DNA from: Hausera hauseri
Taxonomy: Eukaryota
Assembly (NCBI GenBank): GCA_046269625.1
Contig: JBJURY010000012.1
Span: 196 to 64,000, forward strand
Reading direction: 5' to 3'
Length of the DNA: 63,805 bases
The notes below the pieces were generated by a model. That model was given only the letters and a program-made list of their open reading frames with translations. It did not search any database and was not told where the DNA came from. A program made the translations under genes and the position numbers. Position 1 is the stretch's first letter. Every line of letters starts with the position of its first letter. Shown here piece by piece: positions 34,876 through 55,724 of this stretch.

Positions 34876-34952
34876 GCTCGAGTGGTGAAAAAATGGTAGA
34901 CACGAAAGACTCAAAACTTTTTTATTTGTTGGTTCAATCCCGACCTTGAGTA
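34876..34952 (+). tRNA. tRNA-Leu(CAA), short variable region
   Basis: GCTCGAG TG GTG...GGTAGA CAC Leu-type D arm; CT CAA AA loop; A73. Confidence 0.8.
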
Positions 34953-42520: not shown

Positions 42521-43182
42521 TGATAAGGATTATTTCGTTAGATACAGAAACTACTGGATTATCAGTAAGAAACGGTGATAGAATAATAGAAATAGGATGT
42601 GTAGAAATTATAAATAATGAAATAAAAAATAAATACCAGAGATATTTTAAGGTAAATAAAAGGATTTCTTATAGCGCTTATAAGGTACATGGTATAAATA
42701 ATTATTTTTTAAAAGATAAAAAAATATTTAGATATTATTACAAAGACATTATCAACTTTATTAAAAACTCTACTATTATATCCCATAATGCTAGCTTTGA
42801 TATAAAGTTTCTAAAAAATGAATTTAATATTATTAATAAGAATTTCCCAAATAATAAATTTATTGATACATTAGAACTAGCAAGAAAAAAATTTCCAGGA
42901 AAAAAAAATAATTTAAGATCATTATTAAAAAGATTTAATATAAAAGATACTAGAAAACAACATAGTGCTATAAATGATGCATTAAATCTTGCAAAAGTAT
43001 TTATATTAATGAATATAAAAAAAAATAAAATAAGTAATAATAATAATAATAATAATATAAAGAATACAAATAAAATAAAAGATCTTATAAAAGTAAAGAA
43101 TAGATCCCATAAAATAATTATGCTTAGTAATAAGTATATAAGTATAGATAAAAAATTTATAGAAAAAGTAGAAATATCTTAA
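42520..43182 (+). CDS. dnaQ: DNA polymerase III epsilon (proofreading exonuclease)
   Basis: LDTETTG, HNASFD, DTL, HSAINDA; TTG start. Confidence 0.95.
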   Translation: MIRIISLDTETTGLSVRNGDRIIEIGCVEIINNEIKNKYQRYFKVNKRISYSAYKVHGINNYFLKDKKIFRYYYKDIINFIKNSTIISHNASFDIKFLKNEFNIINKNFPNNKFIDTLELARKKFPGKKNNLRSLLKRFNIKDTRKQHSAINDALNLAKVFILMNIKKNKISNNNNNNNIKNTNKIKDLIKVKNRSHKIIMLSNKYISIDKKFIEKVEIS

Positions 43183-52757: not shown

Positions 52758-53681
52758 TTAATTAAAATTAATTCTTAATAAATATTCTATTCTAAATAAA
52801 TTTATTTTGTTAAATAAATAAAAATAATTACAAAAAAAATATTTTTTAAAATAACGTTTAAAAGTAAAACAATTATTTATTAAAATATATTCTTCTAAAG
52901 TAATACTACTATTTATTTTATTAAAAAATAAATGTATATCTTTACTAATTAAGGAACTGGGGTCGCTAGTATGTAAAAAAATAAAATGGATATAATATTT
53001 TTTTTTTAAAAGATACCTATAATATTTAATAACAATATTTCTATAGGATAATTTACCGGGATCATCGCCATCAAATAAAAAAAAAATATTATCACTAAAA
53101 CCAAGAATACGTTTTAACTGTAAAAAACTCAGAAAACATCCTAATATAGAAACAACGTTTTTAATACCTATTTTAAACATACTTAATAAATCAAAACATC
53201 CTTCAACAACATATAAATATTTTTTTTTAATAATACTTTTAATATTATCATAAATATAATATAAATAATTTAACTTATTAAAATAAAAATTACTTTTAGT
53301 AAAAACATATCTTAATTTAGAATTTTTATATATCGATCTACCTATAAATCCTATAATATTATTATTACTAAACAATGGTATTACTAACTTATTGGACAGT
53401 AAAAATAAATTTCCTAACTTACTAAAATGTATTAAATGTTTCATATTATCAACATATTTATTTTTAAAAATACTAATATTAAATCCATTACAATAACCTA
53501 GGGAAAACTTTTTTATAATATAATAAAAACATAAACCTCTATTATGTAAAAACAATAAAGCGTCGCAACTATTAAACAACCTACAAAAAAATATATTATT
53601 TAGTTTTCTATTTACAGACAATATTTTTCTCTTTCTTTTATACTTATAAAAAATTTTTTTATAACCATACCATTTCATCAT
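52758..53681 (-). CDS. dnaG: DNA primase (catalytic core only)
   Basis: LHNRGL, FSLGY, IIGFIGR, VVEGCFD, FDGDDPG, DP; upstream of rpoD. Confidence 0.9.
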   Translation of the reverse strand: MMKWYGYKKIFYKYKRKRKILSVNRKLNNIFFCRLFNSCDALLFLHNRGLCFYYIIKKFSLGYCNGFNISIFKNKYVDNMKHLIHFSKLGNLFLLSNKLVIPLFSNNNIIGFIGRSIYKNSKLRYVFTKSNFYFNKLNYLYYIYDNIKSIIKKKYLYVVEGCFDLLSMFKIGIKNVVSILGCFLSFLQLKRILGFSDNIFFLFDGDDPGKLSYRNIVIKYYRYLLKKKYYIHFIFLHTSDPSSLISKDIHLFFNKINSSITLEEYILINNCFTFKRYFKKYFFCNYFYLFNKINLFRIEYLLRINFN

Positions 53682-54163
53682 TGATTTTTTTTATTAAAAG
53701 CTTAAGTTTTATAAAGAATAACCCAGTTATTAAATTTAGTTCTTTAAGAAAAAGAATTATTTTAGAATTAAACAAAATGAACTTGATAAAATTAATTGTA
53801 TATCTTTATCCTATTTATATTATAACTAAAAAAACAAATTATTATACAGATTACAATTATTACAGTTATTATAACAATAAAACAAAATATAATAATATAA
53901 AATTATTTGATAAAAATTCTAGTAATATTTTAACTACCTTATATAAGGTTAGTATTATTAAACAAAATAGTTTTATTTGTAATATTACTTTTTATAATAG
54001 TATTACCACTCATATACTAAATAGATGTATTATAAGATATTTTAATATGGACATTAATACTAATATCCATATAATCAATTTAGGTTATTTCACAATAACT
54101 AGTATTAAAAACAATTATATTAATATAGAAGAAATAATAAGGTTTAAAAAAGTAAAGATATAA
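53681..54163 (+). CDS. Hypothetical protein (unrecognisable)
   Basis: 160-aa ORF filling the gap in an otherwise fully packed genome; no motif recognised. Confidence 0.5.
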   Translation: MIFFIKSLSFIKNNPVIKFSSLRKRIILELNKMNLIKLIVYLYPIYIITKKTNYYTDYNYYSYYNNKTKYNNIKLFDKNSSNILTTLYKVSIIKQNSFICNITFYNSITTHILNRCIIRYFNMDINTNIHIINLGYFTITSIKNNYINIEEIIRFKKVKI

Positions 54164-54315
54164 GATGGATTAAGTTATATCACTCTTAAATTATTTTTTT
54201 TTATTATTATGCTTTGCTTATAGCGTCTCAAGCCATAACCTACTTAATTTATTAGTTACCTAAAAACTTATTAAAGTCTTTTAATTTCCAGACTTTCCTA
54301 TTTAATTACTTATGA
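54150..54315 (-). ncRNA. rnpB: Probable miniaturised RNase P RNA
   Basis: TAGGAAAGTCTGGA (CR-I-like, 54300-54287), AAGCAAAGCATAATA (54219-54205), ACTTAATCCATCTTAT (CR-V-like, 54175-54160); P4 pairing possible; ends approximate. Confidence 0.7.
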
Positions 54316-55724
54316 AGAGATGGTCGTTAAGATTTAAAAAATCTACCTTAAATATAACTAAGAAATATACTTGTTCAATTAATAATGATATAAATCTATT
54401 TTATCAAGATATTAAATGTACTAAAATACATTGTTATATGTTATTCAAGATAGGAATACTAAATAAATCGGAATTAATAATAATAATAAAAGGTTTATAT
54501 ATAATAAAAAAAAAATTTAATTATAGTAAATTTATATTTAGCTATAATTTTGAAGATATTCATTTAAATATAGAAAATATCCTTATTAAGTTAATTGGTA
54601 ATACTGCTAAAAAAATAAGAACCGCACGGTCAAGAAATGACCAAATAGCAACTGATATAAAAATATGGATTAAAAAAAAAATGTTAAATATTATAAGATA
54701 TCTATTAATATTTATAAATAAAATAATTAGAATATCTTATTTAAATTATAAAACAATAATACCTGGTTATACTCATATGCAAATCGCTCAACCTATTTCA
54801 TTGGGTCATTATTTTATGTGTTATTTTAGTATGTTTTATAGGGATTTAATTAAATTAATTTATTTTAAAAAGAATTTCAATAGTTCTCCATTAGGAAGTT
54901 GTGCTTTAGCAGGTTCTAATATAAGAATAAATCAGAGTTATACATCTAATAAATTAAATTTTAAAAACTATTATATTAATTCAATAGATGGAGTTTCTGA
55001 TCGTGATTATATTTTGGATTTCTTATATATTAATTCTTTAATTATGTTACATATCTCGAAAATTTCAGAGGATATAATTATATGGATGAATACTTTTTAT
55101 GATTTTATAGATTTGCCAGATGAATTTTGTACTGGTTCTTCTATAATGCCACAGAAGAAAAACCCGGATATACCAGAAGTTTCTAGAGCTAGAACAAATA
55201 AAGTTATAGGGGGGTTATTTATAGTTTTTAATATTATTAAAAACATCCCCCTTGCATATAATAAAGATATGCAAGAAGATAAAAATGATATATTTAACTC
55301 TTATAATATAACTAAAGAAACAATAATAATATTTTCAAGAATACTTTTAAAAATAAAATTTAATAAAATGAAAATGTTAAGTTCATTAAAAAATTCTTTT
55401 TCAACTGCTACTGATATTGCAGATTATTTGGTTAGTAAAGGAATAAATTTTAAAGATTCACATAGTCTAGTTTCTAAATTAGTTTTATATTGTATAAATA
55501 AAAATATATATTTTCATAATTTAAAAAAAAAAGATTTATTTAGATTATCTAATAATATTACTAAAAAGATAAATATTAATAAATTTAAAAAAATAATTAA
55601 TATTAACTATTCAGTTAGAAATAAAAAAGGAGAGAATAGTACTAGATTCAGTAATGTTTTAAATCAGATTAAGATAGCTAAAAGAAAAATAAAAAATATT
55701 TTAACAAAGAATAATGATATTTAA
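54312..55724 (+). CDS. argH: Argininosuccinate lyase
   Basis: EDIH, RSRNDQ, PGYTHMQIAQP, TGSSIMPQKKNPD, AYNKDMQEDK. Confidence 0.97.
   Translation: MKRWSLRFKKSTLNITKKYTCSINNDINLFYQDIKCTKIHCYMLFKIGILNKSELIIIIKGLYIIKKKFNYSKFIFSYNFEDIHLNIENILIKLIGNTAKKIRTARSRNDQIATDIKIWIKKKMLNIIRYLLIFINKIIRISYLNYKTIIPGYTHMQIAQPISLGHYFMCYFSMFYRDLIKLIYFKKNFNSSPLGSCALAGSNIRINQSYTSNKLNFKNYYINSIDGVSDRDYILDFLYINSLIMLHISKISEDIIIWMNTFYDFIDLPDEFCTGSSIMPQKKNPDIPEVSRARTNKVIGGLFIVFNIIKNIPLAYNKDMQEDKNDIFNSYNITKETIIIFSRILLKIKFNKMKMLSSLKNSFSTATDIADYLVSKGINFKDSHSLVSKLVLYCINKNIYFHNLKKKDLFRLSNNITKKININKFKKIININYSVRNKKGENSTRFSNVLNQIKIAKRKIKNILTKNNDI

Follow-up and report, generated by a model that had tools for sequence, protein, structure and literature searches.

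We report a candidate gene for a miniature ribonuclease P (RNase P) RNA, rnpB, on contig JBJURY010000012.1 (C12) of the Hausera hauseri assembly GCA_046269625.1, a contig whose sequence points to a symbiont related to Candidatus Vidania fulgoroideorum. The stretch analysed, called the window below, comprises bases 196-64000 of C12 (63,805 nucleotides [nt]), and coordinates are window positions unless given as C12. The candidate occupies the minus strand of the non-coding spacer directly upstream of argH (54164-54311), and would yield an RNA of about 160 nt, counting the 3' strand of a P1-like helix, that retains only P1 and P4 of the RNase P RNA helices. RNase P is nearly universal, and the purines of conserved region I (CR-I) together with helix P4 and its bulged U form the metal-binding catalytic core in every RNase P RNA. 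Judging from sequence, we put the chance that the spacer encodes a real miniature rnpB of this P1-plus-P4 kind at about even.

Results

CR-I- and CR-V-like motifs span a non-coding spacer

We compared the candidate with a consensus set of 31 bacterial rnpB sequences, comprising 30 genes fetched from Pseudomonadota and the one rnpB found in the assembly. The CR-I-like motif, AGGAAAGUCUGGA (54287-54299, minus strand), consists of the J3/4 purines followed by the P4 5' strand AAG-U-CUGGA, with the bulge at U54292, and agrees with the consensus GAGGAAAGUCCGGGC of the set. A match to the type A form of CR-I (GAGGAAAGUCC) is present as UAGGAAAGUCU at 54300-54290. The core GGAAAGUC occurs a single time in C12, and a count over the two strands of the contig (107,996 bp, hence 216 kb) gives a single GGAAAGTC, at the candidate site. 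The CR-V-like motif, ACUUAAUCCAUCUUAU (54160-54175, minus strand), carries the P4 3' strand UCCAUCUU at 54169-54162. It agrees with proteobacterial ACAGAACCCGGCUUAY at 11 of 16 positions, and with the AT-rich, Bacteroidota-type rnpB of the assembly at 12 of 16; compared with the type A form of CR-V (ACAGAAnCCGGCUUA), ACUUAAUCCAUCUUA matches 11 of 15-16 positions gap-free, with AC..AA and CUUA kept. Aligned without gaps to the consensus of the 31 genes, the two motifs together keep AGGAAAGU, the bulged U, AC..AA and CUUA, while one P4 pair is altered on both sides, from the consensus C-G to U-A. CR-V lies about 120 nt downstream of CR-I, and 117 nt separate the two P4 strands.

An initial annotation of the window had proposed an ultra-short RNase P RNA, lacking most of the specificity domain (S-domain), in a GC-rich gap at 54150-54315. 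The letters on which it relied are all present on the minus strand (AGGAAAGUCUGGA at 54299-54287, AAGCAAAGCAUAAUA, proposed as CR-IV, at 54219-54205, and ACUUAAUCCAUCUUAU at 54175-54160); P4 can form as it described, with the bulged U and one mismatch, and the span from CR-I to CR-V, which it gave as about 140 nt, is 140 nt. It also held that the motifs follow the order of Escherichia coli M1 RNA. For CR-I and CR-V this is borne out, their order and register being those of the 31 bacterial genes, but the CR-IV match is not significant (see below). The truly non-coding part of the gap covers only 54164-54311, and is indeed GC-rich for this genome, at 23.6% GC versus 10-19% in the AT-rich spacers elsewhere on C12.

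This 148-nt spacer has stop codons in all six frames and lies between the stop codon of an orphan open reading frame (ORF), ORF160 (54161-54163), and the argH ATG (54312). The candidate spans it from end to end: the CR-I-like motif is 12 nt from the argH start codon, and the CR-V-like motif shares bases with the stop codon of ORF160 on the other strand. Promoter-type spacers on C12 have a GC content of 10-13%. On the minus strand the spacer has 23 G and 12 C, and an excess of G over C is the sense-strand pattern in this genome. Apart from A/T runs, the spacer sequence is unique. The interval from the dnaG start (53681, minus strand) to the argH start (54312, plus strand) is partly coding, as it contains ORF160 (53681-54163, plus strand), which lies outside the proposed RNA and sets its 3' limit. 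ORF160 has 160 codons and coding periodicity (A, 0.63 at codon position 1; T, 0.53 at codon position 3), and at a stop-codon frequency of about 10% an open frame of this length is very unlikely to arise by chance. We found no relative or family for it in Pfam, NCBIfam, the PDB, the Atlas or a protein sequence search. As a hidden RnpA, the protein partner of bacterial RNase P RNA, it was rejected, given a score of -2.2 bits with the RnpA profile and blank results in the other searches.

To score the motif pair we used a log-odds model built from the bacterial consensus, in which GAGGAAAGU, ACAGAA and CUUA were fixed and the five P4 pairs were left free. The candidate is the top non-rRNA pair on the contig, gap-free, with 25.9-26.2 bits versus 22-23 bits for the runner-up. 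When only Watson-Crick pairs were accepted (7 or more matches out of 8, and then an A), there were 8 partner sites genome-wide, and 0.014 would be expected within 390 nt. The pair falls wholly within the 4.2% of the contig that is outside ORFs and known RNAs, a figure that is an upper bound for non-coding DNA, because the crude gene calling missed part of the coding sequence.

A more lenient test, with G.U pairs allowed, gave four possible partner strands on the 3' side within 450 nt, of which three are weak and rich in U. These three, each with one non-pair (at 54020, 53966 and 53885), raise the alternative of a longer rnpB that overlaps its neighbours, with P1-P3 antisense to the argH start and the true P4 3' strand antisense to ORF160. 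Gene overlaps are common in tiny genomes, and ORF160 has no homologue to vouch for it; yet its periodicity is clear and its frame stays open for 160 codons, the N-terminus of ArgH aligns from residue 1 with ArgH profiles, the alternative partners depend on G.U pairs, and Rfam finds nothing in 53900-54600. We consider such an overlapping gene very improbable.

Predicted structure of the candidate RNA

The P4-like helix would comprise seven Watson-Crick pairs (A54295-U54162, A54294-U54163, G54293-C54164, U54290-A54166, G54289-C54167, G54288-C54168 and A54287-U54169), the bulged U54292 and a C54291.U54165 mismatch. The ends of the RNA would be closed by a P1-like helix of 6 bp, in which the 5' strand AAGUAA (54306-54311, minus strand) pairs with the 3' strand UUACUU (54150-54155, minus strand; antisense to the last ORF160 codons) in both the minimum-free-energy (MFE) fold and the P4-constrained fold. 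With -10.8 kcal/mol, the end-to-end duplex ranks above 98% of genomic segment pairs of the same spacing, but above no more than 89% of shuffles.

Three small AU-rich hairpins are predicted between the P4 strands. Hairpin A (54262-54281, minus strand; AAAGACUU/AAGUUUUU, with one G.U pair) appears in the free and the P4-constrained folds. Hairpin B (54206-54248, minus strand), the most G+C-rich part, has the core UAUGGC/GCUAUA and the loop UUGAGAC at 54238-54218, and includes the proposed CR-IV letters; one of its G.U pairs becomes a C.A mismatch on the plus strand. Hairpin C (54172-54185, minus strand) is small and weak, is predicted in the P4-constrained fold only, and would sit just upstream of CR-V, the position of P18 in bacterial RNase P RNA. 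The predicted folding energy is -25.3 kcal/mol for the minus strand and -17.6 kcal/mol for the plus strand, a difference of 7.7 kcal/mol in favour of the minus strand. As modelled, the candidate (about 162 nt, 24% GC) conforms to the minimal mitochondrial-type architecture, namely P1 and P4 in an A/U-rich RNA of about 150 nt with no S-domain.

Evidence against the candidate and competing readings

We gather in this section the observations that weigh against an RNase P RNA gene. The scoring model was composed after the candidate had already been seen, and the motif pair alone is not significant genome-wide, because 10.7% of 150 first-order Markov genomes attain the candidate's score somewhere. 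Significance is reached only once the non-coding location is added, and therefore the case rests on location; the joint chance of motif score and location is about 0.003-0.005, and somewhat higher when the after-the-fact model is allowed for. The CR-IV letters match the consensus GGAGCAAGACCAAAUAGG at 10 of 17 positions gap-free, which amounts to about -2 bits and is not significant. The spacer is flanked by two co-directional plus-strand genes, so that a minus-strand RNA would need its own promoter, and promoter-like sites in the spacer are no commoner than in shuffles.

Family models were blank as well. No RNase P family of Rfam matched at E<=10 in 53900-54600 (701 nt) or in 54120-54345 (226 nt), the latter scanned with all 4227 Rfam families, including types A, B, archaeal, nuclear, type T and Plasmodium, and nhmmer with a profile of the 31 rnpB sequences found nothing at the site. 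The RF00010 search that the initial annotation had proposed gave no match even at E<=10 there, none in the window at its gathering score (100 bits) and none at E<=1 across the whole window; Rfam scans of the window and the rest of the contig revealed no canonical rnpB on C12. The likeness to Pyrobaculum type T RNA that the same annotation had drawn proved loose, with no match to RF02357 at E<=10 on 54120-54345. The suggested search for rnpA was also negative on C12: PF00825 has no match, and the best E was 1.2 in a maximum-sensitivity hmmsearch of 718 ORFs of at least 40 amino acids. The gene tables of four published Vidania genomes list neither rnpB nor rnpA (PMC8406288 Table S4).

On these grounds the letters could be coincidental, and the spacer could be functional otherwise, as a plus-strand promoter, leader or intercistronic structure of argH-trpEGD or as an unrelated small RNA, with the tRNA 5' ends made by an enzyme not encoded here. 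We take this to be a serious possibility, though one clearly short of an even chance. An equally good CR-I/P4/CR-V pair exists in 11% of random genomes, no covariance model or profile recognizes the site, and the spacer lies between two plus-strand genes; still, a coincidence would have placed the top-scoring pair inside the 4% of DNA that is non-coding and made it span one spacer from end to end. A 7-bp hairpin that either strand can form (54296-54273) lies 15 nt before the start of argH, but it is the minus strand that is G-rich and folds better, with G.U pairs that turn into C.A mismatches on the plus strand, and other promoter-type spacers have 10-13% GC rather than 24%. Neither software nor curators have found rnpB in Nasuia, Zinderia or the four Vidania genomes (PMC7191817; PMC8406288 Table S4). 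The blank model and profile searches are of limited weight: we know of no Rfam family for mitochondrial RNase P RNAs reduced to P1 and P4, the published tools, which drew a blank on these sister symbionts, depend for the most part on the S-domain (PMC2996960), and the real gene of Hodgkinia escaped P Finder and Bcheck as well (PMC6581868, PMC7191817).

Further points against the candidate concern its fold. The C.U mismatch in P4 falls at a near-invariant pair beside the bulged U. The MFE fold uses another register, in which AUAGGA/UCUUAU and UGGA/UCCA pair and AAGUC is left as a bulge, and is 3.9 kcal/mol better than the fold with P4 (-25.3 versus -21.4 kcal/mol). A competing local hairpin, AAAGUCU-(10 nt)-AGACUUU (54273-54296, either strand), is a perfect 7 bp, would sequester the P4 5' strand, and is present in the centroid and in the plus-strand fold. 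The fold z-score of the minus strand, -0.87, is weak (plus strand, +0.50). The AAGC of the CR-IV letters pairs locally instead of forming P5, and the candidate has no P2, P3, P15 or S-domain (CR-II/CR-III, P7-P14).

Some of these features would equally suit a decaying relic, in which the two motifs do descend from CR-I and CR-V, but the gene is dead and RNase P activity is supplied by the host or another source. The mismatch at a conserved P4 pair, the loss of all other RNase P elements, the absence of rnpA and rpmH and the weak structure signal are all in keeping with decay. However, where the genome has 20% GC and only 4% of it is non-coding, a 148-nt segment that had lost its function would be expected to be deleted or driven to 10% GC, whereas eight G/C positions of CR-I, P4 and CR-V persist here, including a two-sided change that keeps its pair. 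The nearest sequenced Vidania is 53% identical in ArgH, so the lineage is old and a relic has had time to vanish. We regard a relic as unlikely. As for the shortened RNase P RNA at the heart of the initial annotation, the unique CR-I/CR-V/P4 signature, the GC-enriched spacer and the better-folding strand speak for it; the lack of a covariance model match and the P4 mismatch do not.

Other RNase P and small RNA genes in the assembly

The assembly contains a single full-length rnpB, on contig C564165 (627 bp), at 308-627 on the minus strand (320 nt, 38% GC, 172 bits). Its P4 is CCGGA/UCCGG, as in the fetched Bacteroidota genome; all 30 Pseudomonadota genes have CCGGG/CCCGG or CCGAG/CUCGG. We rejected it as the Vidania-like symbiont's own gene on the basis of this Bacteroidota-type P4, its length of 320 nt, its separate contig and the nature of the sole overlapping contig, which has 32% GC and is ORF-poor. 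It most likely comes from a Sulcia-like Bacteroidota co-symbiont; a full-length rnpB elsewhere in the genome, which the initial annotation had named as counter-evidence, is thus lacking on the symbiont contig. The flank of this gene (307 nt, 25% GC) contains no ORF, and such a non-coding flank is odd for so dense a genome; the overlapping contig, L133 (32% GC), is insect-like.

At gathering and permissive Rfam thresholds, neither the window nor the rest of the contig gave a match to RNase P RNA, transfer-messenger RNA (tmRNA), signal recognition particle (SRP) RNA or 5S rRNA, and L34 (rpmH), Ffh and SmpB were not found on C12. We rejected 5S rRNA, SRP RNA and tmRNA as identities of the spacer; no model matches, and the latter two are unlikely because C12 encodes no Ffh or SmpB.

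Replicon, gene neighbourhood and tRNA genes

C12 has 107,996 bp and 20% GC, is one of 909,086 contigs in the 868-Mb insect assembly, and carries a 16S-tRNA-23S operon at its end. The genes around the candidate are dnaE, rpoD, dnaG, argH, trpE, trpG and trpD. The closest ArgH to that of this contig is from Candidatus Vidania fulgoroideorum, at 53% identity; all others are at about 40%. From this affinity and the size, GC content and operon of the contig, we therefore identify C12 as the near-complete genome of a Vidania-like betaproteobacterial planthopper symbiont. C12 stops where its 23S gene has reached model position 2923 of 2925, and Rfam detects no 5S rRNA on any part of the contig, even at permissive thresholds; possibly C12 lacks a short part of the circle, or the 5S gene has diverged beyond the reach of Rfam. 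An attempt to extend the contig end gave low-complexity matches only. The largest stretch that crude ORF calling left uncovered is C12 42716-43361 (window 42521-43166; 646 nt, 18% GC), which lies immediately upstream of the tRNA-Gly/Cys pair and has no Rfam match.

The window contains 17 tRNA genes (19712-48307), none of which encodes the 3' CCA. In many cases neighbouring genes are separated by 0-2 nt or share one base (43239), as in the pairs Thr/His, Glu/Asp, Met/Arg, Gly/Cys and Leu/Ser. With tRNA genes packed so tightly, some endonuclease must cut the tRNA 5' ends, and 5' maturation, 3' maturation and CCA addition all need activities not obviously encoded here. A weak extra tRNA call (34876-34952, plus strand; Rfam, 37.8 bits) directly follows tRNA-Ser(UGA) and is not reported by ARAGORN.

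Nine public sequencing runs contain the locus; none is listed as an RNA run, their kind being absent from the records. In the assembled run contigs (Logan) the spacer is without differences, but a single run (X9) covered it. In three runs labelled as different organisms and studies (X1-X3), one and the same contig of 10,169 nt, which ends at 53699, occurs at a depth of 14-24x (window 52800-53699), and the depth of X9 at the locus is about 6,500x. This pattern looks like library carry-over, or one data set filed repeatedly, rather than independent occurrences. A protein search with the contig's DnaG yielded no homologue. Samples of about 400 Burkholderiales genomes contained no Vidania, the first queries being DnaG, whose gene is missing from most published Vidania (PMC8406288 Table S4).

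Discussion

By description, the closest analogue of the candidate is the mitochondrial RNase P RNA of budding yeasts and Smittium (rnpB/RPM1) in its P1-plus-P4-only form, which it resembles more than it does the archaeal type T. Mitochondrial rnpB of yeasts shrinks to about 150 nt in Saccharomycopsis fibuligera, with P1, CR-I and CR-V only (PMC3790967). Features shared with the RNA as modelled are P1 and the CR-I/CR-V helix P4, the lack of a specificity domain, AU-richness, and the absence of a gene for the cognate bacterial protein from the same genome. The yeast RNAs differ in being organellar and in having a proven transcript, genetics and a nuclear protein, Rpm2, whereas the candidate is bacterial, is known from sequence and has a mismatch in P4. 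Type T RNA of Pyrobaculum has likewise lost most of the specificity domain and kept the catalytic core, but it is archaeal and has a full catalytic domain (P1-P5, P15, about 200 nt). With bacterial type A RNA (RF00010, including the reduced form of Mycoplasma fermentans) the candidate shares AGGAAAGUC in CR-I, the bulged U of the predicted P4, AC..AA...CUUAU in the CR-V-like motif, and the order and register of these elements in the 31 bacterial sequences; it differs in having no P2, P3, P5-P18, CR-II/III or RnpA, and in a length of about 160 nt versus 312-419 nt in the fetched sequences.

Hodgkinia cicadicola offers a parallel among insect endosymbionts. Its tiny genome (144 kb) also has no rnpA, its tRNA 5' ends are correctly processed, and its cryptic 347-nt rnpB was revealed by small-RNA reads after annotation software, P Finder and Bcheck had missed it (PMC6581868, PMC7191817). 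The Hodgkinia RNA is near full length, however, and the candidate is under half that size.

We propose the following picture, in which homology to rnpB, transcription and catalysis are all conditional on the sequence argument given above. The minus strand of the spacer would encode a drastically reduced descendant of bacterial rnpB, about 160 nt long, whose two ends are joined by the short P1-like helix. The CR-I purine stretch and P4 with its bulged U would have been retained, while the specificity domain and P2/P3 would have been lost, leaving three small AU-rich hairpins between the P4 strands. Such an RNA could cut 5' leaders and so separate the packed tRNA genes of a 108-kb genome. It would act, as in an organelle, with a protein from outside the symbiont genome; the partner would have to come from there because the genome has no rnpA and because minimal yeast mitochondrial RNase P RNAs, reduced to a similar degree, are inactive without imported protein (PMC3790967).

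For several of the smallest bacterial genomes, software finds neither RNase P RNA nor protein, and whether they hide a novel RNA or have none was asked in the P Finder paper (PMC7191817). The candidate comes from a bacterial group in which no RNase P RNA has been found so far. Tentatively, and with confidence a little below even, we suggest that, of all bacterial RNase P RNAs seen so far, that of Vidania is the smallest (about 160 nt, with P1, P4 and three stubs), that this RNA works only with a host-supplied protein, an end state convergent with that of yeast mitochondria, and that mini-genes of this kind may also be hidden in Nasuia, Zinderia, Carsonella and Tremblaya. If true, this would set a new lower size limit for bacterial RNase P RNA, and would provide a pattern with which to search those four symbionts: GGAAAGUC, then 100-150 nt, then the complementary strand ending in CUUA, in a GC-enriched spacer. 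It would also suggest that the host supplies the protein cofactors, which is a hallmark of organelle-like integration, and would give a direct lead on how the tiniest symbionts mature their tRNAs. Should the element prove conserved and expressed, it would answer the question of the P Finder paper for one lineage.

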